Below, piece after piece: positions 7,477 through 64,000 of a DNA stretch of 64,000 nt. Both the position numbers and the translations under genes were made by a program. Each line of letters begins with the position of its first letter. Position 1 is the stretch's first letter. The notes below the pieces were generated by a model. That model was given only the letters and a program-made list of their open reading frames with translations. It was not told where the DNA came from and ran no database searches. This DNA is from Macrostomum lignano (Eukaryota), in the NCBI GenBank assembly GCA_002269645.1, contig NIVC01001754.1, forward strand, positions 1 to 64,000, given 5' to 3'.

Positions 7477-10400
7477 TCACCACTTCCCAGTTCTTGTCAA
7501 GAATCTCTTGTCCCCCGTCTTATTTGGGAAGTCAGCGGCAGATTTCGGAATGCAGCCTCGCTCCTTGAGATCGTGCAACAGGTAAGACCAATTTGGATCG
7601 CGACGCAACAGCTTGCGGTTACCTGAGCAGCGGCGTCAAAGGTTTGCTCAGGGCATGAAAATATTGAAAGATTATGAGCACACACGAACGGTCACGTGTC
7701 ATGTATAAACATTGGCTAAGATCCTCACCAACAATGACGAGGCCTCGCTGAGCTCTCGTCAGCGCTACGTTGGTCTGGTTCTCGTCAGTGATGAAGCCCA
7801 GGAACTTCCTCTCCCAGCCGGGCAGCGGGTTCGCCTCGATGTCATAGTCCGGCATAGAGCGGACCAGACTCAGCAGCACGTACGCGAACTCGCTGCCCTG
7901 ACAGGCGATCACCGTGTTCACCGTTGGCATCGCCAGGTTTTCCTCCTTCAAGCGCCGCGTGATCTCGGACACCTGGTACTTGTACTGGGACATCACCGCG
8001 ATGCACCTGCGAGGATCCTTCTTGTCGTCTCCACTGAGCCGATTGTGAATCTCCTTGTAGACTCGAACCTACACACCAAACACAGAAATTCTACTGGTAA
8101 GTATAAATATTCAAGAGTTCGATCACTAGAGTTCTTCGGTCTGTCATCAACGAAACTCACCACAGTGTCGATCTCCAGCTCGTTCTTGTATGAGTCTTCG
8201 CGACCGTCCTCGGTGGCCACGAGTGTTCTCTCCTCGTGGCCCTGGATGTGCAGGAAGACGATTCTCTCCTCCTCTCCCATGGGGTGAAAATCCTTAGCTG
8301 GAACATCAGGCAATGTGTCAAAATGCTTATTGCGTCTTACACCAGGCCAACATCCGTGAAGGACGTTCGCGTTGCGCTGAGTCAAGAGACCGTGCCTTCT
8401 GACTCCGTTGGCACCGCGACTGTCGAACAAGTCATGCTTAGCCAGTCGATGCCAGTTCAGCCCAGTCCAACTAGCGTTGCCTTGAGTTCGGGTCTCGGCA
8501 TCCAAGACACCCGTCCAGGACTTGGACGGCTGGGTGCGCAGACCTCCGGAGTCTTTCACGGTGTAGAAACGCTTCGACGGAAAGTCCGCTAAGCTCGGAT
8601 GCTGAAAATACATGCATTGGACATGAAGGCAATAAAGGTATTAGCTACACTACTTCACGCAGAGTTTATGTAATGTGACTGCTTTTTACATGCGACTCAC
8701 CATTCTGTACTGCTGATTGAGCATGACCGAGTCGAGGCAGTGCATCTCGAGAAACGTCCTGCTCAGACCCAACTCTGCCGCCGTCTTGTTCTGAATGATT
8801 GGAGCGAGCTGCTTGTGGTCGCCGATCAGCACGACTCTCTCCGCATACTGGGATGCTGGCTTTCTACTGAAAGCTTGATTGCTGGCTCCCAAGCTAGATG
8901 GAACGGATATTTCAGTAGATAATCTACCAACAATAGGAACAAGAAGCTCAGGCTGAGTGCACATTCCAGCTTCGTCGATGATGATCTGAACGAATCGACA
9001 AGCGCGCTGCAGCACAGAAGAGCAGCTGACGGAAGTCGTGCAAAGTACGACGTCGAAGTTTTGCAGCACCCGCTCTTTCGATTTTTGCACTTTGTCTTTG
9101 TACAGCTTCACGCATCCCTGGACGAGTGCGTCTTCTCCCGCCTCCTCCTCGGCGAGCTCCAACGCGCCTCGACGTCTCGATCGCAGTCGATTGTTTCGAA
9201 TGAACCTATCGAACCGAGGGTTTCTTCCGGCTGCGGTTTTGATTGCTGCTTCCATGGTAACCGGAGCCTCAGTCTTGCTACCAATAAACAGTTTGAACGC
9301 GTCATCGAACCCGCCAATGATGTAGGCGTCGTCGCTGTTCTCGCTGCGAATGAGCTCGTGCAGTGCGAAGCGCTTCATTGCAGGCGACACTTCATCGGCC
9401 GTCGAAATCTCTCCGGGCACGGGGTAGTGCATTCGCTCTACCTGCTCGCTGTAAACTCGAACCATTGAGGGACACTTGTCGGCCAGCAAGTCCCGAGACG
9501 CCTCGATGATGACGTCGACCGATCGATTCGACGGTCCGCAGCACAGGATCTGGCGTCGACTTTGACATTTGCGGATCGGTTGCGGATTCCATCTGCGGCT
9601 ATCCGATAAAGTCTTAGCTGAAGTCGAGCATGACAATCGACGCCTACTTTTCCGGCGATAAACTACTTCTTCGAAGCCATCTCTGTTAGCTCTGGTTAAT
9701 TCAGCATCAACGGCATCTTTCCTATCTTCAAACTCAGGTAGAAGACCTTCCGTTTCTTCAAATACGTCCTGAACATCTTGTTCCTCATCTTCCTCATCAT
9801 CGCTGTACTGTGTGTCTTCGAATTCGTTATATTCTTCGTCGTCATCGTTCGGGAGAATAATATCTGGGGCAGGCATAGCATCCTTCCGGTTACGATTGAT
9901 GAAAACGAACCAGAAGATGAGCATTACACCTGTTGTTGTTTTCCCAGTGCCTAAAAGTGTTTAAAGGTAAACCATCAGTGAGAGAACAGCTTCTGTTTTC
10001 CGGACACAAACAAATGTTTGCCGGAAAATCTGTCTCTCAAAGTGTCTACCCTTGATGTACATTAGCTTGTTGTGATTAGCTAGGCATTTAATTGTTTTAT
10101 TTACAAGTGGCTTTTACTTGATGAACGTTTGAAATGCGTACTGCAACTGCAAGTATGCGATGCAATTTCACGCTAGCTGGATATGAAATTTAGTTGCACT
10201 TAAATTTACAAAAGTGATACATCTACTGAGTACTTTTTAATTTGTGCAACCAGCGAGAATCTTGAGTATAATAGCAAACGCACCTCACAAAATAATTTTC
10301 AGAATTGTTTCTATGCTCACCAGGAGGTCCCCAGATAAGAGAAATACGCTTTTTGATTGCGGTTTCCAGAGCTTGTCTTTGGCAATCATTGCAGGGAACC

Positions 10401-13400
10401 AATCGAAGATTCTGCCCTGCGTTCTCATTCCCGACGCGAATATCGTAGGACCTGATGCTGTTTTCCACTAAAGTATTTTTGTAGATCAAGAAGTCGACTG
10501 AAAGGCAAAAATGACTGACTATAAACGTGATTCTATAGATTACACTCAGAAGACCCTTTCTTAAAATGTCAAAAAATATTAATACGGGATCAAAATGTAA
10601 AACAATTGAACCGATGTATAAAAGAAAGGGGACACAGATCAATTGGTATTTGTTGTTTGAATAATTCCTTAAGTAACCTGCGAATCTCATTTCATTTCCT
10701 TACCTCCTTCGGCATTTTTCTGCTCGTCCCAACGGACCAGGGCGTCTGCAGCGTTGATTCCGCGCTGATGCCGCATCGCCTGCAGCACCAACTCGTGTCG
10801 CCTTATTGGTAAGAACTTCATCACGATTTCAATGGTAGCGTTGGTCAGAGTCTCCTGTGGAGCGCTGTCACCTGGGCTGACCTCGTTGAGGTGGAACACT
10901 ACGAAGTTGCAGAAGTGCACGGACTTGTCGTTGCACCGGTTAGATCGGCAGTGGAGGCCATCAAATACGAGTAGGACTCCACCATGGCCAATCCAAGTGT
11001 ACTCGTTGCGGATATTGGCTCGGAGACAGATGTACTCGGAGTATCGAGTAATGCGTTGTGCGGCAGTAAAAACAGCGTCTGTAACATCCTTCACGCGCTT
11101 TTCAGAATTTTTCCTTGTCTTTTCGAGCTTCTTTCTCCATGATTTCAGTTCCTCAGTAACAACCGAGTCGGTGAAGCTCAAGTTGTTCGCGCTGCAAAAG
11201 TTGGAAGTCAAGTTGAACATTCCCAGCCATCTGTTATTCCGTTTGTCCTGTCTCCACACAATTGGCACTTCGCAAAGAACAAACGCTTCGTTGTTGCTGA
11301 CTGAAACTGTAGCTGCTTCCATAGCAACAATGTTTTGCCAGATTTTAACGTACTCGTCAATATCCTGGTAAACTACTTTAATGTAGTGACGCAACAACTG
11401 CTCAAAACTGTCCACAGGACGGCGCCGATGCGCAAGGCAGATAGCAAAGGTATCGCAAATTTCGATAAGCTTCAGCGTCGGTACCAGCATTCCGTGATTG
11501 CTCATGGCGCCAATCTGACCATTTACTTCGTCGCCAAGATGGATGTCTCGGTAAAACCTCACGACGCTTCCGTGTCCATCCGGTGTAGAATAAACATTCG
11601 TTACACCTCTTCTGTCGCCTAAATCAGCTTCTAGAAAACTGCTACTCGACAATTCGCACTTTGAATAATCCCACTTGTGACGCTGAAGCTCATTCTTGGC
11701 CCGCAGCAGCTCCGTGGGTCTAAAACTTGTAACGGACGAAAAACTTGCAACCTTTATTGGATCACACCACGTCTGCGCCCCAGTGCGTCCTACTCTGTCG
11801 TTCGGAGACCGTTCAGCCGCTACAGTAGTATGTAGCAGGATTCGAGCTTTCCATTTGCAGCATACAGCCATGCTTGGTTCCTTCTCTTCGGGTTTTTCGC
11901 AAAGGTTTAAGAATCGATACTGTACAAGTTTGGCAAGTCTTGGTTCACTGTCCAGGTACTCGTGTCTGAACATAATCCCGTCTTCATCAAGTTGCGACAC
12001 TTGGATGACAACCCTTTGCGGCACCTCTTTAAGCTGAAGTGCCGTTTCGGAACCTTTACTACGACGACTAAAGCGTTTATTTCGAATAGTAGCGGCAGTT
12101 AAAAATCTGCAGATTTCATCAGATCCATAAGAGCATTCGACTGATTGAATGGATTTTAGACAAACCCGCAGTGCTCGGTGGACCATGATATCTGCATAAC
12201 GACGCATCGGACTTGTGAAGTGAACGTAGTCTTCCTTTTCCAAACTGAAATGAAGCCTGTTCTCTGAAGTGCTCTCACTGTACTGCGCCAGCTCACACAG
12301 TCCGTGCCAGTCCCGAATCGCCAGTTTCAAATGCGGAAACCGCCTCTCGTCGTACAAAAGCGACAATGCACCTTTGTTGTCGCCTCGTTGACAGAGCGCC
12401 CTAAGATTTTTTGCGTCCTCGTTGTGCATCTGGAACGGAATGTTCGAGCCCGGGACCTCCTTACCGACGAGTTTCAATGCGCGACTCAGCTCAGCAGAAT
12501 GTGTCGTCTTCGGTCCGTGCCGCATAATCCAACGGGTCACGTCGATCTCTCGAGGTCGCTGTTGCACTCGAATCGGGTAAGCTGGAACAGAATCCCGTTG
12601 CTTGTGTAGGAAGTCTCCGACTGCCGAGTTCGCAGCTAGCATCAGCTCCTCTACAAGTGCGCTCGTCTCGGGGTACGACTCGTTCTCCTGCCGAACAAAT
12701 GCAGCCTGACCGAGTCTTGCCAGTCTCCAATCTCGAGTCACCGACCATAGCCGGAGCAGCATCTGCTCGATTCGAGGCTCCAAGGCGCCTGTCTCGCCGT
12801 CAAGGACTCGCTGAACGTCCTCTTTGTTTAGACGCTTGTCAGATCGGATCACAGTCAGACAGATTCGGGAACTCTCTACAAGTCCATTGGCGTTCAAGCT
12901 AAACACGACTGACATGCATCGTCTGTCCTGTCCTTCGACCAGACTGATCGATTTTTCAGCGAGCTGTCGCGGCAGCATGTGATTAGTGAGGGCGCCCATT
13001 TGTTGGGCTCCTTTATTGGGATAGTATGTCGTGCCTCGACGTCTAGCCTCTTGATCGATTGGTGTGTTCTCACCTACAAACTCGGTCAAATCGGTAATGT
13101 GTACACCGACAATAAGCTTGCCGTTCTTTGCCACAGCCAGACTAATTGCATCATCCATGTCCTTCGTGTCCGGGCCGTCAATAGTCACAGTCAAATTATT
13201 TCTGAAGTCTTCTCTTTTTTCCGACTTTAGGTCCACCTTTTGCTGTACTCTTCTTTCGATAGCCATTACCTGTCGGGTCATCAGACTGCATGTCAGTTTG
13301 ATGTGCGGTGGCACCGAGAGGCTGACCTGAATCAGATCAAGGGTCTTTAAAAAGGACGGCTCCTTTAAAACGACATGCACGACTTTGCCTCTCGGGTACC

Positions 13401-14412
13401 ATCGGTCGACTGGCCAATCTTCAAAGCAAACAATGAACAGTTTATCGCAATCATGCTTTAGAATTCTTTCGCACCTTTTCTCAACAAACTCAATTTCCTC
13501 GCTGCTGTCATCCTCCACTGGACTGTACACAGACACAAAAGTTTTATTAGCGAAATCATGAGGACTCATACTAAGGATCTGAGAAGAGGAAAGCATTCCT
13601 TTAGCCTGTCTTTCAAGCATGGCTGGTGTCATGATTTTGTTGATTCTTCTCTGCTGCTTCCAAATAGCGAATCGGTTGTCGTATCCAATTTTCGGCACGC
13701 TCGCACACAGCGGCCTCATGAGAGTTCCGTAGTCTTCAATGACTTCGCACACGAACAGCTTGTACTTTAGCTTCTCATTCTGACGCCACATGCCGACAAC
13801 GGTGCCATGAGCTTCAACTCCGTTCTCATCGACCTCCAACACTTTGACGATTACCTCGTCGTCTTCGCAAGCTCTACCACTGTTGCTGCGCCCTTTCAGC
13901 TGAATCTTCTGTATCGGATCCTCGGCTGACAGCGGATAGGCCCAGGCGAGTTGCGGTCCGTCCAGGTGCAGTCGGCAGACCTTGTACTTGTCAGGCTTAT
14001 TCTGCAGTCGCTGCATAAGTTGCGCTTTAGTTTTCATGTTATAAGCTGGCTTGTCCATCAATCTGCCCCTGAAAATGCCTCTAGTGATGCTTAATTTGCT
14101 TGACTCAATGATTTCTACCACAAAGCGAGTACCATACGCCATCGTGATCTTCTTGTTCATGTAAATGTTCTTTGGACTGGCGTCATTGTCAGAACTGTCG
14201 ATTGGCACTGCAACTTGAGCAAAGTTGGAATCTACTCCAAGTGTGCAGATTTTGAAAATTTGTGGCTTTTCCTTTGCCAAGTCTTTTAGGCGGTTGACTG
14301 GATTCAAAATTCCGCTCTCGAAGTCGTCCAACTGTTGACGGTCTTGGAAGAAACGAACCAGCTCGAGCATCCTTTGGTCTCTGAATCTATCTGGGTCAGG
14401 TGGTTCCGCCAT
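7477..14412 (-). CDS. HELZ2: HELZ2-like RNB exoribonuclease fused to a UPF1-like SF1B helicase, copy A (about 2020 aa; exons 14412-10704, 10497-10321, 9950-8701, 8601-8161, 8068-7729, 7622-7477)
   Basis: RNB motifs: VTIDGPDTKDMDDAI, VEELMLAANSAVG, HFTSPMRRYADIMVHR. CSD-like IQLKGRSNSGRACEDDEVIVKVL. Helicase motifs: LIWGPPG|TGKT, ILCCGPSNRSVD, IIDEAG, LIGDHKQLAP, LNQQYRM|HP, TVIACQGSEFAYV, QTNVALTRAQRGLVIVG|N. All introns are GT-AG and phase-consistent. Start placed at GCCATGG (14412) by alignment with copy B; the ORF is open to 14505. Confidence 0.88.
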
Positions 14413-15199
14413 GGCTCTGACGGATGGACAAAGTAAAAGTGATTTTTGAGCATTATGTTCTACAGGACAAAGCAGGCCGGCTTGATTGGCACGGGTTTTC
14501 ACCATAGACTAAAATTTTTAATGGTTTTCAAGATTGTTTTCAATCTCTGATTAAATTAAAAGCTGCTAAGGTTGCATTTTGCTGAAACAACGTCTGCAAA
14601 CGGATGGCATTGGCACTAAATTCAGTGAAACGAATCAAACAGACTAAAACCCACAGATAAAATCGGTTATTGGAGAAGGACATTGTGGCCTTGTTACGAG
14701 TTACATGGATTTATATATATATATTAAGTATATATTACTTACCCTGATGCCTCTGACTTATCGGATCATGCAGTGGAGTTAAAAATTTGGTGATTAAAAG
14801 CAGCCAAAGCAGAGATGTCAAAGTTTTCACAACACGGGAAAATAAACGGCTTGCCTAGGCCCTTGCCTACGAGCAGATTATAAAGCGCTTCGTCGAAGCA
14901 GCTCACGGTTTTTCCAGTAAATTTCTTGAATCAGCTAGAAACAAAAGCTCACAGTACACTCCGAAGTACATTATTGAAAAGTTACACTTTCTCTCCTTAG
15001 CCTCAGTACACTTCTAGCTCACGTAGCTGTTACTGTTTTAAGTCTCCTGGAATTTCTGTCCGCAATGATAGCTATGCAGAAAGCAGGCAAATGTACGCAA
15101 CAATGTACGCGACCTTGCATTTGGACGCTTGCGAAAAGAGAAAAGCATTACGACAATTCAGTTTTCTGTCTCCGAATAACATCGCGGTGTGAGACTTAA

Positions 15200-15870
<671 letters not shown>

Positions 15871-16489
15871 TATTATTATTATTATTAATATTATCAGTAT
15901 CATCAATACATTGCTCATGCCAGCCATCCCGATAAAAGCTTGCATTGTGATTTAGCGGGACCGTGGTTGCAGTCGCGTGTTTCTCATTTTGCCATGCAAC
16001 CACAGTTGTGGAAAGTGCAACCGGTACGGTTAATCTACGAAGCTAAATATAGGCTTGACGCTTGGTTGCCAGACAGGGAGTATCAAGGGCTAGAGAGAGA
16101 AGAGAAGAGCAATTCACCTCCCCCTCTACCCCTTCTTCTGCGCTGTCCAGTAAAACGAAGCCATCTGCTATAATGCAGGGTATTTTTGTTTTGTAGCGTA
16201 CTTGCTTTTTAAGCGTACAGTCTGCATGTCTTGTACGCTCCGAAGCGTACACTAATAATAAATATTATACCTATAATACCTTGTATACAGCCGAAGTCTG
16301 ACCGTTGAAATTCCAGGAAATTTCAGGCAAACTACAAGCATAAGACGGCTATAATATTGGGAGCAGAGGCAGAAAAATTTTCTTTTTCGATAACTACAAG
16401 GCTTATCTAATTTTTTTCGAAACAGTTTGCTAGACTACAGGTATTGTAGCAAACGTGTTTAATAAAAAATTCTTGGTCCCTTAACAGCA

Positions 16490-19400
16490 ATGTCCCAACG
16501 AGTTGCCAACCGAGAGGAATTGCTTTCTATAATCCGGCTATTTGAAGACCGGCAACAAGAAGACGAATTTGAAGCCAGCATTTTGAGACCGAGGAATAAA
16601 TTGGAGGACCTGCTCAGGAACCAGCCCGATGTGTTCTACCGCTGCGTCCTGGGCAGTGATGCCAGTCGCTGTAGCTTCGCGGTGCCAGTGGATCGGGCTT
16701 TCCCAGAGAAAATCCAACTTGACGAGGAGATTTCGCTCACCCAAGGCTCGCAGTTTGTTGTGAAAGTCATCGATTTCAGTAGCGGACCCTTCCCAGTCGG
16801 GAGATTCTTCGGCAAGCTCACGGACAAGCCGCCATACGAGGCAATGCAGACACGAGCGCAGCTGCTTGAGCGAATGGCTGAACAGCCAGCCAAATATAAA
16901 ATCTGCCATCTTCACTTGGACGGTCCTCAGCTCGGTTGGGCCTTTCCGGTCTCGCCAGACGATCAAGTTTCTAAGATCCAGCTCAAAGGTCGCAGCAACT
17001 GCGGCAGGGCCTGCGAAGACGATCAGGTAATCGTTGAGTTGATGAATGCCGAGGAATTACAAGCCAACAATGGTCCTGGCGGACAGAGCAGTCAAACCAG
17101 CTTGGAGCCATCCGGTAGGGTTGTCGGGGTCTACAAGCAGCGCGTTAAGCTGCGCTACAAACTATTGGTATGCGAAATGCTCGACGCTCTCGGCACCTGC
17201 ATGCGACCTCTGTGCGGCACCGTGCCGAAGATCTCGTACGACAACTCGTTTGCTAGAAGAGAACACGAAAGGAGACAGAGAAGAAAGCCGCATGAGAAGA
17301 GACAGCTTCGCAAAAAATTCGGTTTGATTACTGAAAGAGAACGATTAAAAGAAATTTCCTACGATTATGCCAACAAAAATTTAGTCTCCATTTACCGACC
17401 TGTGCTCGATGAGGCTGAAAATCGATTTATATTCGTTGAAGATTCTGTTTTCAAAGTTATCAAACACGACTGTGAGCATCTCTTTGTGGTCTGCATCACT
17501 GAGTGGCCTGTACAGAATTACTATCCGAAAGGTAATGTGATTTGCGTGATTTCCAAGGCACATTCATTTAGTCAAGACGTTGAACTGCTGCAACTAATTC
17601 ATGGGATTCCACTCCCATACAGCGAAGATGATAAATTTCGAGACGTTGAAAGAATACGCGAAGTTGCCGGAAACGACTTCGTCCCGGAACGCAGAAATGA
17701 CTTCAGAAGTCACATTACCGTGACTATTGACGGTCCGGACACGAAGGACATGGATGATGCGATTAGTCTTAAGAAGCACAAAAATGGGAAGCTTACTGTA
17801 GGCGTGCACATCACGGATTTGGCTGAGTTTGTGGGTGAGGACACACCAATCGATCGAGAGGCCAGACGTCGAGGCGTAACATATTATCCAAGCGAAGGTG
17901 CCAAGCAAAAAGGAGCAACTGCAAACCACATGCTGCCGCGACAACTTGCCGAGTCTCTGATCAGTCTTGTCGAAGGACAGGACAGACGATGCGTGTCAGT
18001 CGTGTTTAACTTGAACGCCAATGGACTTGTAGAGAGTTCCCGAGTCTGTCTGACTGTGATCCGATCTGACAAGCGACTAAACAAAGAGGACGTTCAGCGA
18101 GTGCTTGACCGCGAGACAGGCGCCTTGAAGCCTCGAATCGAGCAGATGCTGCTCCGGCTATGGTCGGTCACTCGTGATTGGAGACTGGCAAGACTCGGTC
18201 AGGCTGCATTTGTTCGGCAGGAGAACGAGTCGTACCCCGAGACGAGCGCACTTGTAGAGGAGCTGATGCTAGCTGCGAACTCAGCGGTCGGAGACTTCCT
18301 GCACAGGCATGGGGATTCGGTTCCAGCTTACCCAATTCGAGTACAACAGCGACCTCGAGAGATCGACGTGACCCGTTGGATTGTGCGTCACGGACCGAAG
18401 GCGACACATTCTGCTGAGCTGAGTCGCGCATTGAAGCTCGTCGGTAAGGAGGTCCTGAGCTCGAACATTCCGTTCCAGATGCACAACGAGGACGCAGAAA
18501 ATCTTAGGGCGCTCTGTCAACGAGGCGACAACAAAGGCGCATTGTCGCTTCTGTACGACGAGAGACGGTTTCCGCATTTGAAACTGGCGATTCGGGACTG
18601 GCACGGACTGTGTGAGCTGGCGCAGTACAGTGAGAGCACTTCGGAGAACAGGCTTCATTTCAGTTTGGAAAAGGAAGACTACGTTCACTTCACGAGTCCA
18701 ATGCGTCGCTATGCAGATCTGATGGTCCATAGAGCGGTAAGATTCGTTCTTAACCAAGGAGAAAAGTATCTTGGGCCAACATCTGACATCAGTAAAGTCT
18801 GTGAACATTTGTCTGCCGTTCAGAAGAAGACTAGGCGGTTTGAATCCAGCTGTGAGTGTGCAGATTTTGGTGAGGATTTAGCAAAAAAGCCCGTTAGAGA
18901 TGTTGTACAGATTTCTTCAGTTGATAAGGATGGTCTTTCAGTGCAGCATAAGATGCTCGATCAGTCACCAAAAGTGGCTCGAACTGTCCAGTTTCGGTCG
19001 CTGAGTCTCAGCGCAGTGCCCAGCGTGATTGAGGAGGAAAAAATAGTTCGCTGCAACTGGACAGCCAGAATTCTTCGGCACACTGCCGCTGAAGTCGTTA
19101 CGAGCAGTGATACGGAAAAGTCTCGAAAAAGTCACCGAAGTGATATCAAAGTGGCGAACAGCAGCAATAACACATTTTTCCGGTCACGTGAGCTGCTGTC
19201 TATGAAGAAAGAGCTTTTAAGCAAAAATGGAGACTTTGAACAGTGCGGCGTTTCGAGTTTGGATTTGATCGAAGCAGACTTGACTGAAAGGCGCGGCGTT
19301 GCTAAGATTTATGCTTTGTCTGACACGGCCGGGAGCATCGTGAATTTTTATCGAGACTTTTTGCTTGGCGACGAAGTGCGAGCGCAAATTGGAGCAGTCA

Positions 19401-22400
19401 GGAATCACGGAATGCTCATTCCCACCGTTCAGCTGTTGGAAATCTGCGACACATTTTCAGTTTGCCTCGCGCATCGACGCCGACCAGCTGACAATTTCGA
19501 GCAGGTGGCTCAACGCCGCAGCAAGCGTTCATACGATGACGTGGTTGAGTATGCCGACATTTGGCAGGGCATTGTAGCGATGGAGTCTGCTTCAGTATCC
19601 ATCAGCAATAATGAAACTTTTGTACTCTGTGACGTGCCGCTTACGTGGAAATGGGACGACGAAAACAACCGCTGGTTGGGAATGTTCAATCTAACCGAGT
19701 CTCTGTGCCAGCGCAGAAACATCTGCTTTACAGACTCTGTACTGATTGAGAGTAATAAATCCTGGCAAAAAAAGTTGAACCAAAGCACTGAGACTAAGAA
19801 AGGTAAAAAGAGAGGCGTACCGGACGTTACCAATGCTGTTTTCAAGGCCGCGAAAAGCGTTAAACGCTATGCCGAATACATTTGCCTTCGTGCTGTGCAA
19901 GACGAGTACACGTGGGTTGGCCACGGTGGCATCCTGCTCGTGTTTGACGGCATCCATTGTCGGTCAGACCGGTGCAATGACAAGTCTGCGCACTTTTGCA
20001 ACTTTGTTGTCTTCCATTTGAACGAAGTCAGTCCCGTCGGCAGTGCTTCCCAAGAGACCCTCCGCCATGCTACCGTGGAGTTGATAATGAAGTTTCTGCC
20101 CATCAGAAGGCATGAATTAGTGTTGCAGACGTTGCGGGGCCAGAGCGAGCATCGAATCGCAGGAAGACTTGTACGATGGGATCAGAACGAGGATATCAGG
20201 GGTGGTAAGACAAATTACTTTGCTACTTGCTAAATAAATTACGTTTTCATCATTTTTTAAATTTGCATAAAAATCATAACTATATTTCAGTTGACGAAAT
20301 GTTGTACCGCAATGCTCTAGCTAAAAGCAAAACGCTGCCATTCCAAATTAGAGTTTCGGACAGACTCGTTCCCTGCAACAAGCAACAAGCAGAAGCTCTA
20401 AATGCAGCAGTGCAAAGACAGGTCTCCCTCATCTGGGGACCACCAGGTTAGAAAACACACTAAATGCCTATAAGTTCTTACAGCTTCTCAATTTATCCTT
20501 TGTCAATTTATCAAAAAATCTAAAACGCTGACACAGGAACAGGCAAGACAACAACAGGAGTAATGCTGATCTACTGGTTCGTATTCATCAACCATCACAG
20601 AAGCGATGGCTTCATGAATCTCGAGGACAGCAGTGAAGACGAGGATGAGGACGACAACGAAAGCGAAACCGAAGATACCTCTGCTGAGACTTCTAAGGAA
20701 AGTCAGGACGACGGCTTTCAGGTGGTTCAATACCCACATCGCAGAGGACATAAAATTCCCGGTCGAATGCCAGTCAGAACTTCTTCTTCTGACAGGTACA
20801 TGGGCAAGAGGCCGGAGAATCGAAAGCGTCAGAGTCGACGCCAGATCCTGTGCTGCGGACCGTCGAATCGCTCGGTCGACGTCATCATCGAGGCGTCTCG
20901 GGACTTGCTGGCTGACAAGTGTCCTTCAATGGTTCGAGTCTACAGCGAGCAGGTAGAGCGAATGCACTACCCCGTGCCCGGAGAGATTTCGACGGCCGAT
21001 GAAGTGTCGCCTGCAATGAAGCGCTTCGCACTGCACGAGCTCATTCGCAGCGAGAACAGCGACGACGCCTACATCATTGGCGGGTTCGATGACGCGTTCA
21101 AACTGCTTATTGGAAGCAAGACTGAGGCTCCAGTTCCCATGGAAGCAGCAATCAAAACCGCAGCCGGAAGAAACCCTCGGTTCGATAGGTTCATTCGAAA
21201 CAATCGACTGCGATCGAGACGTCGAGGCGCGTTGGAGCTCGCCGAGGAAGAGGCGGGAGAAGACGCACTCGTCCAGGGATGCGTGAAGCTTTACAAGGAC
21301 AAACTGCTAAAATCGAAAGAGCGGGTGCTGCAAAACTTCGATGTCGTACTTTGCACGACATCTGTCAGCTGCTCTTCTGTGCTGCAGCGAGCTTGTCGAT
21401 TCGTTCAGATCATCATCGACGAAGCTGGAATGTGCACTCAGCCTGAGCTGCTCGTTCCGATAGTTGGTCGACTAAACGTCGAAAAAGAAGTGCCTTCCTG
21501 TCTGGGAGTACAAAAAGCAAATCTCATAGGAACACCCGCATCTCAGTATGCGGAGAGAGTCGTGCTGATCGGCGACCACAAGCAGCTCGCTCCAATCATT
21601 CAGAGCAAGACGGCGGCAGAGTTGGGTCTGAGCAAGACGTTTCTCGAGATGCACTGCCTCGATTCGGTCATGCTCAACCAGCAGTACAGAATGGTGAGTT
21701 GCATTTAAAAAGCAGTCCCATTGCATAAACTCGACTTAAGACACTATGGCTACAGTCTTTATTGCCTCCATGTCCAATGCATGTACTTTCAGCATCCGAG
21801 CTTAGCGGACTTTCCGTCGAAGCGTTTCTACACCGTGAAAGGCTCCGGAGGTCTGTGCACCCAGCCGTCCAAGTCCTGGACGGGTGTCTTGGATGTCGAG
21901 ACCCGAACTCAAGGCAACGCTAGATGGACTGGGCTGAACTGGCATCGACTGGCTAAGCATGACTTGTTCGACAGTCGCGGTGCCAACGGAGTCAGAAGGC
22001 ACGGTCTCTTGACTCAGCGCAACGCGAACGTCCTTCACGGATGTTGGCCTGGTGTAAGACGCAATCAGCCTTTTGACACATTGCCCGATGTTCCAGCTAA
22101 GGATTTTCACCCCATGGGAGAGGAGGAGAGAATCGTCTTCCTGCATATCCAGGGTCAGGAGGAGCGAACACTCGTGGCCACCGAGGACGGTCGCGAAGAC
22201 TCATACAAGAACGAGCTGGAGATCAAGACTGTGGTGAGTTTCGTTGATGCCATGGTGAAGAACTCTAGATAGTGATGTAACCGCCCTTGTCGCCCGTCCG
22301 CTTCGTTGACGGGCGACAAGGGGCAATGACCGTAGGCTGCCTATGACCGGGCAATTACCTGACAGACCTCCAGCACTAGAATGTCCCACCCACATGATTG

Positions 22401-25212
22401 ATAGCTTTGGTAGCGCTTTCGTGACCAGAGGGCCAAGGACCCACATGGACCCAACCTGTAGCCAAGGTGCAATAGTTGTTCACTCGGCCATAGCATGACC
22501 GAGTGGCTGCCACTACTCTATGTGACCTGGCGCACCTAGATCTTACTACCAGACCTCTCGAGGCTAGAGCCCTGCCTGGATTGGTTACCAGGGGATTTAG
22601 GCTAACAGGGGAGACACATGCAGCCGAGTACAGGGACTCTGCTTGGGGCATGATCGGGAACTCTGGGCTCAATCTGGAGGATTTCTCAGCAGGGGATCCT
22701 TTGTGGCTGTGAGCGAGGCGGACTTGCGTATTCAATTACTAAGAGTAGTGTGAGATGAACATGTACTGTCTGTACATGTACTGAGTACAATCTCTGTACA
22801 TGTACTGAGATTGCTCAGGGCGAAGGGACGCGTCAGCATGGGGTTGCAACCTTCCTACTGCCATTCTGTGCCTAGACTCACTAATTCCCTCTACTGCCCT
22901 CACACACGGACCCGCAGCACGCACACACAGGCGGGCTTGCACGGGGAGAGGCCATTAGCTTACCCAAACTTCCTTATGCTTTGCCACCCAGGGAGAAAGG
23001 CTTAGCAAGCCATGAATGAAATGATGGTGAAAGTGTGAATAATGAGGAGTTTAGTAATAGTTAACGATTAGGCCCTTAGGCAAAATAATCAGACAATTAG
23101 GCGCCTTCACTATTAAATAAAATACAGCAAAAGATACGGTATCACAATTGGCTCAGCTCTCTAATCAAGCAATGGGAAATAAGCAAACCCCGGATAAGCA
23201 AAAGCAATTAGAGCACAAATTAGTAACAGGAACTTACCGGCGGCTGCACAGGGAGAGAGAGAGAGAGCGATGGAGTGACCATGGGCGGCTGCTGGCTGCA
23301 GACAGGCAGACTGTGAAGCGGCGATGCGCTGAAGTGACGAGGCGCTGATTTAGTTCAGGCGATGCTGAAGATGCTGGGCGGTAACAGACCGCGGGACGGC
23401 AGATAAGCTCACTTGGGGAGCTGAGGTAACTTGGCGGTAACAGACCGCGGACCGGCAGAGATTCGTCCTATAGACGAATGGGTCAGATCAACGTCTGACA
23501 GCAAGTCCAAAGAAGGACAAGAGGAGTGCCGAAGTTAAGGTTCTCACGCCGAAAACCGCTTCCTTAAATAGTCTTCCCAGCCGCCGCTCCAAGGTCGTTT
23601 CCATGACTCCCTCTCTCTGATTGGCTGCCGGCGAAATGACGTCAGAATGAGTCATGATGAGAATCATGAGAACGGCATAGCAACATGAGAATGGCGCAAT
23701 CCAGAGGTGGGGTGGGGGCTAATTGGCGCAGCGGGAGGTCGAGAAAGTGTTGTGCAAGCAAACATTGAGAACAATGGGGCTGGGGTCGAGAAAAAAGGAA
23801 ATGGAAATCGGAGATTGGGGAGAATCGAGAACAATAGAAAAGTAAACATTGGAGAAAAGGTGCTAATTAGGTGCGAAAACGAGAACAAAAGAAAGATAAA
23901 ATCCGGGAAAATGTGAAAATCGGGTGTGAAAAGAACAAAAGAATAAAAAAACGAGAACAATAGAAGCAGAGGTGGGGTGGGTGTCGCATGAGAAATTTGG
24001 GAAGGAGAACAATAGCATGAGAAAAGGCAGTGCAAGAGGGGGTGGTGAGTCATCGATGAGTCATCGAGGGGAAAGAGGGGTCACAAGGCTTGCTTCACCG
24101 TTTGGGAGTTTACTAAGGGGTGGGGCGACGCTGAGCGCACAAAGTACTGTGAGTAGGCACGGGAAGAGAGGGGAAAGCGCAGGTAAAACAGTCCAAAAAG
24201 AAAAAAAAGAGGGAAAGTGGGAAAAATACATGATAGATAGGGTAGAGCGCATGGGAAATAGAGTAGCGGGGGAGGTGCAGAAAGAGATAGGGGCTCCGGA
24301 AAGGCTCGTGTGGTGGGGTGGGAGACGGAGCGAGGCAGCAGGGGGCGCAGCAGAGCGGGAGTCAGCAGGCCTGGTCAAAGACCTGGCCCAGTCTCGACGG
24401 CTCTGCTCAGGGAGTGCACGGAGATCGGAGGTACTTTTGAAAAATTTCCCTTGCTATATCCCACGACCAGAGCGTGGTTACATCAATAGCTCTTTTAGTA
24501 TTTAGACTGATCCGTACAAGTTCTGTGTTCGGTGTTCAGGTTCGAGTCTACAAGGAGATTCACAATCGGCTCAGCGGAGACGACAAGAAGGATCCTCGCA
24601 GGTGCATCGCGGTGATGTCCCAGTACAAGTACCAGGTGTCCGAGATCACGCGGCGCCTGAAGGAGGAGAACCTGGCGATGCCAACGGTGAACACGGTGAT
24701 CGCCTGTCAGGGCAGCGAGTTCGCGTACGTGCTGCTGAGTCTGGTCCGCTCCATGCCGGACTATGACATCGAGGCGAACCCGCTGCCCGGCTGGGAGAAG
24801 AAGTTCCTGGGCTTCATCACTGACGAGAACCAGACCAACGTAGCGCTGACGAGAGCTCAGCGAGGCCTCGTCATTGTTGGTGCGTCTTTTGACTCTTTTG
24901 AAGAAGGTTGTGAAACATTGAACATGTGGTAGCATTTAGGATCTTTATGAGCATATTCAACTGCGGAATAATGTTCGCACGCAGGTAGACTAGTGCATTG
25001 TCCGCTAATGACTAATTGCTTAGCCATTGTGTAACTGGATTTTTGAACTTGAAAAATGTCTCACTTCAGGAAACAAGAGTCTATTGAGACGCGATCCGAA
25101 CTGGTCTCATCTCATTTTCGATCTTGAGCAGCGCGGCTGCGTTCCCAAGAATCCGGCGGATTTTCCAAACAGAACGGGCGACCGGCGGGCCATGACGGCT
25201 TCTGGAAAGTAA
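16490..25212 (+). CDS. HELZ2: HELZ2-like RNB exoribonuclease fused to a UPF1-like SF1B helicase, copy B (about 1983 aa; exons 16490-20204, 20291-20446, 20537-21693, 21793-22233, 24540-24879, 25070-25212)
   Basis: Same motif set as copy A (VTIDGPDTKDMDDAI, HFTSPMRRYADLMVHR, WGPPG|TGKT, DEAG, GDHKQL, QYRM, CQGSEF, NVALTRAQ). Five introns sit at the same positions and phases as in copy A. Confidence 0.88.
22273..24485 (-). mobile_element. 2213-bp solo-LTR-like insertion in intron 4 of copy B, with 10-bp terminal inverted repeats and a 4-bp target-site duplication
   Basis: Starts TGATGTAACC (22273) and ends GGTTACATCA (24485), giving TG...CA ends and a perfect 10-bp IR. Flanked by ATAG at 22269-22272 and 24486-24489. 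The paralogous intron in copy A (8160-8069) is only 92 bp. No coding capacity recognised. Confidence 0.75.
23564..23644 (-). promoter_or_regulatory. Pol II promoter-like cluster in the LTR: CRE (TGACGTCA 23637-23644), CCAAT (23620-23624) and TATTTAA (23570-23564)
   Basis: The three motifs occur in canonical upstream-to-downstream order on the minus strand. Confidence 0.45.
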
Positions 25213-25327
25213 CCAACGACTGTCGCGAACTGTGTTGGGATACTTATTAACTGCTGTAACCTATTTTTGTTGTCTACAGTTTTATTCCAGAATAATCATT
25301 TTGACGCTGTAAAAAAGTATTGCCTTG

Positions 25328-25685
25328 TTGGATGGGTGTCGTAGCCTAGTGGTTTATCGCGACGGTCTTCCCTATGTGCCAGCAGCCCATTCTCGACCTC
25401 AAGTACAGTCGCACATTAATTTGGGACTAAGTTGGAGTCTCGGCTTGGGTGTACTCGTGCATTTAACGCCCAGCTTGAGGGCAACCCTAGCGAAGTGACG
25501 GCATAGTAAAATGTATATACGTACCTTTAGGTGTATGTATTACGAGAAATAAAGTTAGGGCTGCTATACACTCCTGTGTGAGTGTGCGCCTGCTCAGGGG
25601 AGTCGGTGGAATGGGCAGTAATGCCTCTCACTGGTTAAGTGACAATGTCGCTTCAAGTGCGCCAGGGTGCACACAGTCCGCTGCG
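25328..25685 (+). mobile_element. tRNA-headed SINE-like element, family 2
   Basis: A-box-like GTAGCCTAGTGG head. The 3' part (25530-25685) matches the reverse complement of 44915-45050 (AAATAAAGT...TACACTCCTGTGTGAGTGTG.GCCTGCTCAGGGGAGTC...ATGGGCAG.AATGCCTCTC...AAGTGCGCCAGGGTGC.CACA). Confidence 0.6.
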
Positions 25686-26540
25686 ACCAAAAGTTTTCTA
25701 GCTAAGCGAAAGACTTTGCTCAATTTTGATTTTGCTCTCTGGTTCTGCTAAACTTTATGTTTAGGTAAAATTGGTCAGTTTGACTGAAACCAAATCATTT
25801 TTGATTGACATTTTGATTGACAAAATGGGGGAGCAATGTGCGAGGGTTGGACGGATTAAAGCTACCCCGATCAGTTTTCTCGTATCTTTTAATTCCGAAC
25901 AGTCCCAGAGAAATTGCTCACTGGCGCATAGAGTGGCCACTTTTCAATGTTGCTGAGTATGTGTCCCTTGGATTAATTATCCTGTCATCTTTATTTTTGT
26001 CTCTTTTGGTCTCAAATTGTTAAGAACTTGTTAAGTTATTCAGCAGAAGCTTTTAAGACTTGCTTCTTCATGTTCCGTGGCGTGTTATTAAAAGAAATAT
26101 TACGGTTTTTTACTTCAGTTACCACCGCTAGCACAAGCCAACGACACTTAAAATTTATTGTGTATTTCTCAATTTTTTGTCCTTTTTTACTGTATGGAAT
26201 ATTGGGTTCGCTATAATTACAAAATAATCAGCTCTAAAAGTTTGAGAATAACAAACAATCATGGGATCAAAAACACCTTTGTTGAGTAAAATATCATCAA
26301 GTTTCTCCACCATCGTTGGGTTCTTCAAACAAAACAAATCCGAAAGAGCTCTATAGCCAATATTGTCAGCAAATTCAGTGGCAAAACTTTAAGCGATCAA
26401 AGAACAACTTCCGCAAATTTCTATCAAAACGTGAAGAGCTAGCTGCAGTACACATGCAGGCTATATAAAAAGTCAAACATACTCGTAATTATTAATTAAC
26501 AAAAAGTGACAAATTTTCTCGATTCTCGGTTCAGAACCGC

Positions 26541-47172
<20,632 letters not shown>

Positions 47173-50918: not shown

Positions 50919-54882
<3,964 letters not shown>

Positions 54883-55504: not shown

Positions 55505-55969
<465 letters not shown>

Positions 55970-61387: not shown

Positions 61388-64000
61388 TCAGTCTAGTCTC
61401 AGTGTCTGGTCTCAGTGTCTGGTCTCAGTGTCCAGTCTCAGTGTCTGGTCTCAGTGTCCAGTCTTAGTGTCTGGTCTCAGTGTCCAGTCTCAGTGTCTGG
61501 TCTCAGTGTCCAGTCTCAGTGTCTGATCTCAGTGTCTGGTCTCAGTGTCTGGTCTCAGTGTCCAGTCTCAGTGTCCAGTCTCAGTGTCTGGTCTCAGTGT
61601 CTGGTCTCAGTGTCTGGTCTCAGTGTCCAGTCTCAGTGTCCAGTCTCAGTGTCTGGTCTCAGTGTCTGGTCTCAGTGTCTGGTCTCAGTGTCTGGTCTCA
61701 GTGTCTGATCTCAGTGTCTGGTCTCAGTGTCTGATCTCAGTGTCTGATCTCAGTGTCTGATCTCAGTGTCTGGTCTCAGTGTCCAGTCTCAGTGTCCAGT
61801 CTCAGTGTCCAGTCTCAGTGTCTGGTCTCAGTGTCTGGTCTCAGTGTCTGGTCTCAGTGTCTGGTCTCAGTGTCTGGTCTCAGTGTCTGATCTCAGTGTC
61901 CAGTGTCTGGTCTCAGTGTCTGGTCTCAGTGTCTGGTCTCAGTATCTGGTCTCAGTGTCTGGTCTCAGTGTCTGATCTCAGTGTCCAGTGTCTGTGACTC
62001 AGTGTCTGGTCTCAGTGTCCAGTCTCAGTGTCTGGTCTCAGTGTCTGGTCTCAGTGTCTGGTCTCAGTGTCCAGTCTCAGTGTCTGGTCTCAGTGTCTGG
62101 TCTCAGTGTCTGGTCTCAGTGTCTGATCTCAGTGTCTGGTCTCAGTGTCTGATCTCAGTGTCTGGTCTCAGTGTCCAGTCTCAGTGTCCAGTCTCAGTGT
62201 CCAGTCTCAGTGTCCAGTCTCAGTGTCCAGTCTCAGTGTCTGTGTCTCAGTGTCTGGTCTCAGTGTCCAGTCTCAGTGTCCAGTCTCAGTGTCTGTGACT
62301 CAGTGTCTGGTCTCAGTGTCTGGTCTCAGTGTCTGGTCTCAGTGTCTGGTCTCAGTGTCCAGTCTCAGTGTCCAGTCTCAGTGTCTGGTCTCAGTGTCCA
62401 GTCTGAGTGTCCAGTCTCAGTGTCCAGTCTCAGTGTCCAGTCTCAGTGTCCAGTCTCAGTGTCTGATCTCAGTGTCTGGTCTCAGTGTCTGTGTCTCAGT
62501 GTCCAGTCTGAGTGTCCAGTCTCAGTGTCTAGTCTCAGTGTCCAGTCTCAGTGTCTGGTCTCAGTGTCTGGTCTCAGTGTCCAGTCTCAGTGTCTGGTCT
62601 CAGTGTCCAGTCTCAGTGTCCAGTCTCAGTGTCTGGTCTCAGTGTCTGGTCTCAGTGTCCAGTCTCAGTGTCTGGTCTCAGTGTCCAGTCTCAGTGTCCA
62701 GTCTCAGTGTCTGGTCTCAGTGTCCAGTCTCAGTATCTGGTCTCAGTGTCCAGTCTCAATGTCCAGTCTCAGTGTCCAGTCTCAGTGTCCAGTCTCAGTG
62801 TCCAGTCTCAGTGTCCAGTCTCAGTGTCCAGTCTCAGTGTCCAGTCTCAGTGTCCAGTCTCAGTGTCCAGTCTCAGTGTCCAGTCTCAGTGTCCAGTCTC
62901 AGTGTCCAGTCTCAGTGTCCAGTCTCAGTGTCTGGTCACAGTGTCCAGTCTCAGTGTCCAGTCTCAGTGTCCAGTCTCAGTGTCCAGTCTCAGTGTCCAG
63001 TCTCAGTGTCTGGTCTCAGTGTCCAGTCTCAGTGTCCAGTCTCAGTGTCCAGTCTCAGTGTCTGGTCTCAGTGTCTGTGACTCAGTGTCTAGTCTCAGTA
63101 TCTGTGACTCAGTGTCTAGTCTCAGTGTCCAGTCTCAGTGTCTGGTCTCAGTGTCTGGTCTCAGTGTCTGGTCTCAGTGTCTGGTCTTAGTGTCTGTGTC
63201 TCAGTGTCTGGTCTCAGTGTCCAGTCTCAATGTCCAGTCTCAGTGTCCAGTCTTAGTATCTGGTCTCAGTGTCTGGTCTCAGTGTCCAGTCTCAGTGTCT
63301 GTGACTCAGTGTCTAGTCTCAGTGTCTGTGACTCAGTGTCTAGTCTCAGTGTCCAGTCTCAGTGTCCAGTCTCAGTGTCTGGTCTCAGTGTCTGGTCTCA
63401 GTGTCTGGTCTTAGTGTCTGTGTCTCAGTGTCTGGTCTCAGTGTCCAGTCTCAGTGTCCAGTCTCAGTGTCCAGTCTCAGTGTCTGGTCTCAGTGTCTGG
63501 TCTCAGTGTCCAGTCTCAGTGTCTGGTCTCAGTGTCCAGTCTCAGTGTCTGTGTCTCAGTGTCTGGTCTCAGTGTCCAGTCTCAGTGTCCAGTCTCAGTG
63601 TCTGGTCTCAGTGTCCAGTCTCAGTGTCCAGTCTCAGTGTCCAGTCTCAGTGTCTGGTCTCAGTGTCCAGTCTCAGTGTCCAGTCTCAGTGTCCAGTCTC
63701 AGTGTCTGGTCTCAGTGTCCAGTCTTAGTGTCTGGTCTCAGTGTCCAGTCTCAGTGTCTGGTCTCAGTGTCCAGTCTCAGTGTCTGATCTCAGTGTCTGG
63801 TCTCAGTGTCTGGTCTCAGTGTCCAGTCTCAGTGTCCAGTCTCAGTGTCTGGTCTCAGTGTCTGGTCTCAGTGTCTGGTCTCAGTGTCCAGTCTCAGTGT
63901 CCAGTCTCAGTGTCTGGTCTCAGTGTCTGGTCTCAGTGTCTGGTCTCAGTGTCTGGTCTCAGTGTCTGATCTCAGTGTCTGGTCTCAGTGTCTGATCTCA
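61388..64000 (+). repeat. 13-bp satellite (CAGTGTC[TG/CA]GTCT)n, about 200 copies, runs off the window end
   Basis: Read directly; two dominant variants CAGTGTCTGGTCT and CAGTGTCCAGTCT. Confidence 0.98.

Follow-up and report, generated by a model that had tools for sequence, protein, structure and literature searches.

In the primate red/green opsin genes and the RHD/RHCE pair, shared sequence is for the most part homogenised by conversion, a few segments remain different, and selection has been demonstrated at known functional sites. The pair of genes described here, A and B, resembles them in its partial concerted evolution with islands of divergence. Conversion is also known between adjacent inverted paralogues, where tracts can take in introns and divergence acts as a barrier (PMC3966223). 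The C. elegans pairs hsp16-1/hsp16-48 and hsp70-7/hsp70-8, like A and B, stand head-to-head within a few kb and have highly identical coding segments beside unalignable flanks (PMC3966223). Ectopic conversion in Drosophila is a further interlocus example (PMC3924832), and these cases share with A/B the limitation by divergence and the mode of detection, in which over-long identical fragments are sought as in GENECONV. A/B differs from those inverted paralogues in its very large genes (about 7-9 kb, six exons), in strongly patchy conversion with at least four separate tracts, three ages and an internal unconverted island, and in an A-to-B donor/acceptor asymmetry that the homeologous copies of this neopolyploid make measurable. 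Sex-chromosome and autosomal palindromes likewise have inverted arms around a unique spacer and undergo intrachromosomal, non-reciprocal exchange (PMC3403216). However, classical palindromes exceed 99% identity over whole arms, intergenic DNA included (PMC3403216), whereas in A/B the homogenised sequence amounts to only about 35-40% of each gene, and alignment fails at the spacer-proximal ends, at the 3' ends and in most introns. A/B is a converted paralogue pair, not a true palindrome.

The window, a stretch of 64,000 nt of a Macrostomum lignano contig (NIVC01001754.1), contains the two intact, divergently transcribed HELZ2-like genes (Table 1). The first-pass annotation had described two complete head-to-head genes across a spacer of about 2 kb, and the inverted repeats were found where it had placed them. 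The modelled products match exactly UniProt A0A1I8HZ95 (A) and PAA64396.1 (B); each gene is complete, and its introns, all canonical GT..AG, occupy positions common to the two, and A has a further in-frame ATG upstream, at 14505. The arms differ in length because of a 2.2-kb insertion in intron 4 of B. The sole shared word in the spacer is the 12-mer GAAATTCCAGGA (15045-15056 on the minus strand, 16307-16318 on the plus strand); 3.8% of shuffles produce a shared word of at least 12 nt, and we would regard this 12-mer as a weak lead only.

Table 1. Features of the A/B locus, in window positions; identities and 4-fold-site distances (d4) are between A and B.
Feature	Position	Strand	Partner	Details
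Gene A (Mlig031546 g1)	7477..14412	-		2020 aa; splice-aware modelling guided by annotated proteins
Gene A exons	14412-10704, 10497-10321, 9950-8701, 8601-8161, 8068-7729, 7622-7477	-		
Gene B (Mlig018244 g1)	16490..25212	+		1983 aa; splice-aware modelling guided by annotated proteins
Gene B exons	16490-20204, 20291-20446, 20537-21693, 21793-22233, 24540-24879, 25070-25212	+		
Spacer between start codons	14413..16489	.		2077 nt; non-homologous, not palindromic
(CTAT)166 microsatellite	15207-15870			within spacer
Inverted repeat	12173-13128		17780-18735	91%
Inverted repeat	8886-9573		20821-21508	94%
Inverted repeat	8126-8864		21530-22268	94%
Inverted repeat	7726-8114		24494-24882	96%
RNB-core tract, arm A	12193..12908	-	B 18000-18715	95.7%; d4 0.144
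RNB-core tract, arm B	18000..18715	+		19 fixed A/B differences; 9 B-private, 13 B'-private sites
Older intermediate conversion zone	17685..17999	+	A 13223-12909	78%; d4 0.46; start of RNB domain, catalytic motif I included
Helicase tract a	20845..21449	+	A 9549-8945	97.2%; d4 0.113; motif Ia to motif II
Unconverted island in helicase tract	21450..21545	+	A 8944-8849	58%; 39 fixed differences
Helicase tract b	21546..22255	+	A 8848-8139	exons 97%, d4 0.023; exon 3 end, intron 3, exon 4, first ~22 nt of intron 4
Intron 3 of B	21694-21792			79.8%
Insertion in B intron 4	22268..24494	.		2227 nt; imperfect 21-nt terminal inverted repeats 22267-22287 / 24471-24491
Exon-5 tract	24500..24879	+	A 8108-7729	exon 98.5%; d4 0.037

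Both proteins match two OB_HELZ2 domains, RNB (4e-62 in A) and AAA_11/AAA_12 (UPF1-like SF1 helicase) in Pfam, and their best named database matches are HELZ2 or HELZ2-like proteins. Both carry the RNB catalytic motifs TIDGPDTKDMDDA and HFTSPMRRYAD and the helicase motifs GPPGTGKT, DEAG, GDHKQL, QYRMHP and VALTRAQRG, the latter placed by alignment with UPF1; the block following the RNB domain has Ssd1-like, then UPF1/SETX-like accessory folds. Vertebrate HELZ2 similarly has two HELZ2-type OB/cold-shock domains, RNB, an S1-like region and a C-terminal UPF1-like SF1 helicase (PMC10516660). The earlier label "HELZ2-like" holds for this CSD-CSD-RNB-S1-like-helicase 2 part, but the N-terminal zinc fingers and helicase 1 of the vertebrate protein (PMC10516660) are absent, and A/B would represent a short form of HELZ2. 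Moreover, A and B have all four motif-I aspartates, whereas human HELZ2 has an Asp-to-Asn substitution (PMC10516660). By homology, each protein is predicted to combine a 3'-5' RNB exoribonuclease with a 5'-3' UPF1-like helicase, the latter feeding or unwinding structured RNA. Vertebrate HELZ2 degrades structured RNA, restricts LINE-1 and is interferon-induced (PMC10516660; 10.1101/2022.03.26.485892); no interferon system is involved for the flatworm pair.

Identity between the arms is a mosaic, as had been noticed at first reading. By exon it is 66% (exon 1), 59% (exon 2), 84% (exon 3, itself a mosaic), 97.1% (exon 4), 98.5% (exon 5) and 65% (exon 6), and introns 1, 2 and 5 are unalignable (44-52%), with intron 3 intermediate as previously proposed. 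The 4-fold-site distance is 0.02-0.14 in the RNB core, the helicase body and exons 4-5, and reaches saturation (0.55-0.69) in the N-terminus, the post-RNB region, exon 2 with the acidic insert, the 96-nt island and exon 6. Matching 4-fold sites form an uninterrupted run of up to 66, whereas no run in 20,000 permutations exceeded 37, and sliding Nei-Gojobori pS is 0.00-0.15 within tracts and 0.7-0.9 elsewhere. One could suppose that the cores are similar simply as the most constrained parts of the protein, since the tracts do fall on its catalytic domains, RNB and RecA. Nevertheless, conserved segments beyond the tracts have saturated silent sites: alignment windows 1140-1170 combine an amino acid identity of 0.81-0.82 with a pS of 0.78-0.94, and the Walker-A region (alignment column 1290) an identity of 0.68 with a pS of 0.62, so the low dS in the tracts does not result from constraint. 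Constraint alone, to which we give next to no credence, is refuted as the cause of core identity by these silent-site data (4-fold divergence of 2-14% in tracts against 55-69% elsewhere) and by the introns: introns 1, 2 and 5 cannot be aligned, yet non-coding intron 3 is 99% identical between the arms of a second copy of the locus. Silent sites are saturated across about 60% of the coding sequence (1234-1271 of approximately 2000 codons lie outside tracts), which supports the earlier view that the duplication is old. GC3 is also higher inside tracts (0.67 versus 0.51-0.52), but this excess cannot be credited to biased conversion, as the lone paralogue is GC3-rich across its entire helicase half.

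The tracts are sharp-edged and fall into at least three ages by 4-fold distance (0.02-0.04, 0.11-0.14 and 0.46). The description of the cores as nearly base-identical does not hold for the RNB core, and the claim that they are kept identical was overstated, with tracts at 95.7-98.5% and of several ages. Four features go beyond the first-pass annotation: the island, the intermediate zone, the saturated exon 6 and the insertion in intron 4 of B. The island encodes a loop between helicase motifs II and III, and the Mlig_3_7 models annotate 69 nt of it in A (8925-8857) as an in-frame GT..AG intron; it may be a facultative intron in A. The insertion divides the helicase tract, has an empty site in A (intron 4 of 92 nt) and no further copy within the window, and gave no Pfam or Rfam match. 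It is also present in B', the B gene of the second locus copy, and is most likely a DNA transposon of the non-autonomous kind.

Oddly, the youngest block of the window follows exon outlines, as exons 3b, 4 and 5 have 2-4% silent divergence and the introns between them about 20%, and its 3' edge lies 3-4 nt beyond the exon-5 splice donor. Such a pattern would be expected had breaks in B been repaired exon by exon from A mRNA or cDNA. However, conversion from cDNA normally deletes introns, and all five are kept; the RNB tract lies inside an exon, as does the helicase tract at its 5' edge; intron 3 is converted in the second locus copy, which shows a DNA template; and the 2.2-kb insertion and the diverged introns suffice as barriers. 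Repair from cDNA is thus very unlikely. Barriers of heterology account for the exon shape only qualitatively.

The M. lignano assembly holds S/L1/L2 homeologues with 1.9-2.4% SNP divergence (PMC10733133), and a homeologous second copy of the entire locus, L001, carries the same head-to-head pair (A' and B'), collinear at 96.6-98.8%. It has the same mosaic, in which the tract boundaries coincide and the fixed differences are shared, plus lineage-specific patches; its intron 3 is 99.0% identical between A' and B', against 79.8% between A and B. In four-sequence site patterns, all informative sites outside tracts group AA'|BB', and fixed differences are nearly gone inside. B and B' differ at 2.58% of sites in tracts versus 0.84% outside (p = 2e-7), and A and A' at 0.49% versus 0.87%. 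Private changes in tracts number 52 in B, 22 in B', 5 in A and 1 in A' (p = 5e-16), and this 74:6 ratio on the B copies identifies B as the acceptor; A was the donor after the locus copies split. The comparison reveals conversion postdating that split (AB|A'B' at 5 sites, AB'|A'B at 1), and most tracts date back at least to the subgenome split. Concerted evolution is shown here at the homeologue level only, within M. lignano.

With three subgenomes and 36% of reference scaffolds reported as chimeric between them (PMC10733133), the fine detail of the g1/g2 comparison could be affected, and the high-identity blocks might be products of homeologous or paralogous reads that were collapsed, mis-polished or chimerically joined. 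This is very improbable, because the window and L001, assembled separately, agree in boundaries and fixed differences, tract identity stays below 100%, all four ORFs are intact, and the B/B' excess occurs only in several distinct pieces homologous to tracts, with 99-100% identity in the sequence between these pieces, so that an artefact would need multiple precise chimeric switches. The mosaic alone carries no polarity, and a recent inverted duplication, with most of one copy later replaced from a distant third paralogue, would also produce it. We consider this extremely unlikely: the protein search gave only A-like or B-like copies (96% and 59%) and one 34% family, with no candidate donor; the diverged parts, about 60% of the coding sequence, are collinear with the same intron positions, unalignable introns included; and nested tracts of several ages suit repeated conversion better.

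Overall, an old inverted duplication of a HELZ2-like gene, segments of which were repeatedly overwritten by DNA-level, non-allelic gene conversion between the arms, is very probably the correct explanation; homogenisation of the cores by conversion had been proposed before, and uniform dS along the gene is decisively rejected. Both copies remain intact. Conversion would persist where protein constraint leaves the arms similar enough for pairing and halt at heterology (the diverged introns, the insertion and the island), and the concerted evolution of the cores would then be a by-product, with the remainder free to diverge. In the adaptive form of the earlier suggestion, selection would separate the RNA-recognition or partner-binding modules of A and B (CSD/OB, S1-like, 1B/stalk-like, acidic insert and C-tail), and the enzymatic cores would stay matched through conversion. 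In agreement with this, both genes are intact, with full catalytic motifs and purifying selection, the diverged blocks are accessory RNA-path domains (OB_HELZ2; Ssd1-like and UPF1/SETX-like folds), the island survives within a 1.4-kb converted block, and vertebrate HELZ2 is, as noted, interferon-induced and restricts LINE-1 (PMC10516660; 10.1101/2022.03.26.485892). Still, selection holding the modules apart is not borne out and the adaptive reading is unlikely: recent changes in all four copies show purifying selection (pN/pS 0.15-0.43, older dN/dS being masked by saturated dS) and no diversifying selection in the diverged parts, heterology that blocks heteroduplex predicts the sharp boundaries and the island equally well, and the island may be the facultative intron mentioned above. 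Moreover, the neighbour of the pair is a PapD-like ciliary-type gene, the other HELZ2-like paralogue stands alone, and no defence genes were found among the locus neighbours, which places the locus outside any defence cluster. The hypothesis of a two-specificity RNA-defence locus draws on homology to vertebrate HELZ2; if the adaptive mosaic were true, the two genes would degrade RNA with separate specificities in a role against viruses or transposons. As it stands, A/B is a clear instance of gene conversion, if a fairly ordinary one.

Genes A and B, the minus- and plus-strand members of the head-to-head pair, are transcribed divergently from either side of a 2077-nt spacer, and each consists of six coding exons separated by GT..AG introns whose positions are identical between the two genes. 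The gene B model agrees at every residue with PAA64396.1 (BOX15_Mlig018244g1), and the gene A model with UniProt A0A1I8HZ95; in the Mlig_3_7 annotation, gene A (Mlig031546g1) lacks 23 residues but is otherwise the same. The nearest database proteins to both were all from M. lignano, and a literature search on the gene identifier found no paper.

Pfam identified an RNB domain (PF00773; E = 4e-62 in A and 1e-61 in B), preceded in each protein by two OB_HELZ2 domains (PF25049; E = 1e-26 to 3e-26), and AAA_11/AAA_12 helicase domains in both. The motif I aspartates of the RNB domain (TIDGPDTKDMDDA) and its motif IV (HFTSPMRRYAD) are kept in A and B, and PDB relatives of the nuclease part include RNase R, DIS3L1/2 and RRP44. 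Moreover, the helicase half aligns with UPF1/NAM7 (E ~1e-31), with motifs I, II, III, IV and VI conserved. Human HELZ2, an interferon-induced protein whose family also occurs in some invertebrates (e.g., corals and molluscs), is composed of zinc fingers, helicase 1, CSD1/2, RNB, an S1-like domain and helicase 2 (PMC10516660). The flatworm proteins share the CSD, RNB and helicase 2 parts, but are without zinc fingers and helicase 1. No zinc finger was matched by Pfam in A or B, where the N-terminus is too short, the first OB domain starting only ~120-160 aa into the protein; therefore, HELZ2 architecture as defined in that work is present only in part. In addition, no helicase 1 was found upstream of the CSDs, and the spacer, in which no coding ORF was found besides a microsatellite reading frame, leaves no room for extra 5' exons. 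By architecture, A and B are HELZ2-type short forms and not full HELZ2 orthologues, and, judging by homology, they probably function as that protein's C-terminal two-thirds does, coupling an ATP-driven helicase to a 3'-5' exonuclease. A third HELZ2-like paralogue, Mlig017669 (34% identical), stands alone, with unrelated RING-finger, Tctex-1 and RRM genes on its flanks.

A repeat search of the window returned four long inverted pairs of 91-96% identity, located where the first-pass annotation had placed the near-identical blocks of the two arms. Classical genomic palindromes are more than 99% identical along entire arms, non-genic DNA included, whereas here identity forms a mosaic of 45-98% over the whole arm, with intron 3 and the intron-4 flanks at about 78-82% in the window. 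No A/B homology was found in the spacer-proximal or the 3' flanks of the arms.

Features of the locus and its surroundings; tract limits (B coordinates) come from a column-by-column alignment map, and 4-fold sites were counted only in codons whose first two bases are shared by A and B
Feature	Position	A-B identity	4-fold p-distance	Remark
Gene A	ATG 14412, stop 7477 (minus)			2020 aa, frame intact
Gene B	ATG 16490, stop 25212 (plus)			1983 aa, frame intact
N-terminus			0.69	
Exon 1		66%		
Exon 2		59%		
Exon 2 + acidic insert			0.55	
Exon 3		84%		itself mosaic
Exon 4		97.1%		
Exon 5		98.5%	0.037	
Exon 6		65%	0.69	
Introns 1, 2, 5		44-52%		unalignable
Intron 3		79.8% (window)		
Older intermediate zone, RNB 5'	B 17685-17999	78%	0.46	
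Young RNB tract	B 18000-18715	95.7%	0.14	
Post-RNB			0.67	
Helicase tract a	B 20845-21449	97.2%	0.11	
Unconverted island	B 21450-21545	58%	0.62	39 fixed differences/96 nt
Helicase tract b	B 21546-22255		0.023	
Exon-5 tract	B 24500-24879			end 3-4 nt past splice donor
Intron-4 insertion	B 22268-24494			2227 nt
Segment spliced out in gene A models	8857-8925 (minus)			69 nt
Segment dropped in older gene B model	B 21463-21546			84 nt
(CTAT)166 microsatellite	15207-15870			in spacer
12-mer GAAATTCCAGGA	15045-15056 (-), 16307-16318 (+)			
Downstream neighbour	~26500-35100 (minus); second locus copy 20037-28708			
Micro-/minisatellites	499-1135, 26888-27310, 36135-37436, 39759-44382, 51221-52667, 55505-55969, 61391-64000			
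22-mer x112 array	40809-43271			extreme strand skew
Mlig017669	NIVC01000542.1, 10001-25111			15-kb span

The likeness of the cores had been attributed to arm-to-arm conversion, the alternative being that purifying selection alone maintains it, with uniform dS along the gene. Uniformity is ruled out, as sliding Nei-Gojobori pS was 0.7-0.9 (saturated) off the tracts, i.e., the segments taken to be homogenised by conversion, and 0.00-0.15 within them. Furthermore, strong constraint does not lower dS in this pair, since two conserved controls retained high pS: alignment windows 1140-1170 (amino acid identity 0.81-0.82, pS 0.78-0.94) and the Walker-A region in exon 2 (0.68 and 0.62, respectively). 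The longest run of matching 4-fold sites was 66, against a mean maximum of 14 and a largest value of 37 in 20,000 permutations. Non-coding sequence was homogenised as well: intron 3 is 99.0% identical between A' and B', the genes of a second copy of the locus, as compared to 44-52% between A and B for introns 1, 2 and 5, which excludes protein-level constraint. Silent-site heterogeneity, the over-long identical run and the co-homogenised intron thus strongly support conversion. The cores are indeed homogenised, but "kept identical" overstates the case, as the tracts lie below 100% and belong to several epochs. GC-biased conversion was also considered, given that GC3 is 0.67 in the tracts and 0.51-0.52 outside, and higher in the younger tracts; this signal was not counted because the unpaired Mlig017669 is itself rich in GC3 (0.73-0.92) throughout its helicase half.

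The second copy was identified through protein P0002 (Mlig018244g2), whose gene lies head-to-head with Mlig031546g2 on another contig of this assembly, NIVC01000591.1. Its alignment to the window is collinear, at 98.8% on the A side and 96.6% on the B side. As the assembly is known to hold three homeologous subgenomes, whose SNP divergence is 1.9-2.4% (PMC10733133), the two contigs are best read as homeologous or haplotypic copies. When the four-way alignment of A, A', B and B' was compared piecewise (B intron 4 being ~2.3 kb), every informative site off the tracts grouped A with A' and B with B'. Tract boundaries were common to both copies, so that the mosaic must be older than the locus split. 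The identical blocks could also be artefacts of assembly, collapsed or chimeric products of two haplotypes or loci; judged from the two assembled contigs, the fact that the mosaic was assembled independently on both, in tracts that fall short of 100% identity, argues strongly against this.

Comparison of the copies also revealed a direction. B and B' differ by 2.58% in the tracts and 0.84% outside (Fisher p = 2e-7), and A and A' by 0.49% and 0.87%, respectively. Private changes in the tracts numbered 52 in B, 22 in B', five in A and one in A' (binomial p = 5e-16). In general, the B copies are the acceptors, with conversion running from A to B. Sites joining A with B and A' with B' numbered five, against one of the opposite pattern, a likeness within lineages that is local and judged at the homeologue level only, most tracts being older than the split of the two copies (g1 and g2). 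In intron 3, where 20 differences are private to B, B' groups with A and A' and not with B, and the simplest reading is an A'-to-B' conversion after the split. Moreover, 4-fold divergence of the youngest tracts (0.02-0.04) is comparable to homeologue pS off the tracts (0.012-0.025). The RNB tract and helicase tract a are several times as old, and the intermediate zone at the 5' end of the RNB region is older yet; these differing ages imply at least three conversion epochs on a saturated background.

We then considered what bounds the tracts. Their edges meet heterology, namely unalignable intron 5, the insertion in B intron 4, the diverged core of intron 3 (in the window copy) and the island, a 96-nt unconverted stretch in the helicase tract. 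Intron 4 measures 2306 nt in B and 92 nt in A, the latter corresponding to both ends of the former; the extra sequence is bounded by imperfect 21-nt terminal inverted repeats, and its site is empty in A and filled in B'. Neither Pfam nor Rfam matched the insertion, the window contains no second copy of it, and Rfam and Pfam scans of the locus found nothing further; the insertion is probably a non-autonomous DNA transposon. Today, it breaks arm-to-arm homology. As in M. lignano, conversion operates between adjacent inverted paralogues in Caenorhabditis, where tracts can take in introns and diverged sequence may hinder conversion once similarity falls below the requirement (PMC3966223). We favour, by inference, a mechanical feedback in which constrained catalytic exons would stay pairable and be converted again and again, silent sites along with them, while less constrained segments would drift beyond the pairing threshold and then escape conversion. 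Such feedback explains the exon-shaped pattern of the youngest block only in part. It is also possible that a spliced RNA served as template for that block, but this is disfavoured, as every intron is still present in A and B, and the conversion event in the second locus copy took in an intron.

Divergence is found in the two OB/CSD modules, in a post-RNB block of ~450 aa and in the C-terminal tail; within the helicase, it affects the acidic, low-complexity insert that separates motifs I and Ia, and the island, which forms a loop between motifs II and III. It is plausible that these parts bind substrates or partners. For the post-RNB block, an AlphaFold model of moderate quality (pLDDT 69, pTM 0.68), whose fold matches have TM-scores of 0.14-0.26 and serve for qualitative domain assignment only, weakly suggests a likeness to the C-terminal part of Ssd1, a member of the RNB family, followed by a UPF1/SETX accessory region. 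The 23 residues skipped in gene A (RLSTEISVPSSLGASNQAFSRKP) correspond to an in-frame GT..AG segment that overlaps the island: it is spliced out in the Mlig_3_7 models PAA64395.1 and PAA80284.1, called an intron by the transcript-based annotation and coding in other models, and an older gene B model drops a segment at the homologous place. The gene A segment may represent a facultative in-frame intron ("exitron").

The first-pass annotation had gone further, proposing an RNA-defence locus with two specificities. On such a reading, selection, and not pairing mechanics alone, would maintain the mosaic, and A and B would form an RNA surveillance pair of two receptors and one engine in an animal that lacks interferon. 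A-to-B conversion would co-adapt the engines, i.e., nuclease and helicase, and selection would purge convertants of the CSD/OB, S1-like/1B-like, acidic insert, island and C-tail modules, through which A and B would each recognise their own viral or transposon RNAs, or their own partners. We regard this as unlikely. Frames are intact in all four genes, and pN/pS across them is 0.15-0.43, so that recent selection is purifying, with no sign of selection for divergence; with dS saturated, the older dN/dS of these modules is beyond estimation. The neighbours of the pair, moreover, are not defence genes.

The middle of the divergent-promoter region, where the arms are non-homologous, is occupied by the (CTAT)166 microsatellite. 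The matching unaligned gap is about 1.7 kb in the second locus copy (about 7690-9383) and about 0.7 kb in the window; hence, the array length probably differs between the copies. The sole word common to both upstream regions, GAAATTCCAGGA, lies 644 nt from the start codon of A and 183 nt from that of B, has no other occurrences in the 64 kb, and in its B copy holds TTCCAGGAA, a GAS-like TTCN3GAA motif. It was the only candidate for a shared regulatory sequence, and is only a weak lead, since 3.8% of shuffled spacers share a word that long. The downstream neighbour encodes a product of 2208 aa or more, with one exon carrying a flagellar-associated PapD-like domain (PF14874, E = 3e-10), and is of ciliary and not defence type. 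Micro- and minisatellites abound in the window, including several (ACAG)n, (CAGA)n and (TTGA)n arrays, each of more than 100 copies, and a 13-mer x200 array that reaches the window end.

Conversion between adjacent inverted paralogues is already well known, and the A/B pair is a new, rather instructive instance. The conversion reading is strongly supported, and is refined over the first-pass annotation by several epochs, the island, the transposon barrier, A-to-B polarity and homeologue-specific events. Altogether, the pair offers a clean, quantifiable case of two very large animal genes evolving partly in concert, in which the neopolyploid second locus copy works as an internal time-stamp, making tract ages, post-split conversion and donor/acceptor polarity visible without population data. 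It also calls for caution in using the catalytic domains to date these paralogues or to infer HELZ2 family trees. Flatworms are shown to carry a short HELZ2-type nuclease-helicase, probably active by homology, and M. lignano has three such paralogues, A, B and the lone Mlig017669. If the diverged modules do give different RNA specificities, the pair would provide an accessible system, amenable to RNAi by soaking, for HELZ2-type roles beyond interferon.
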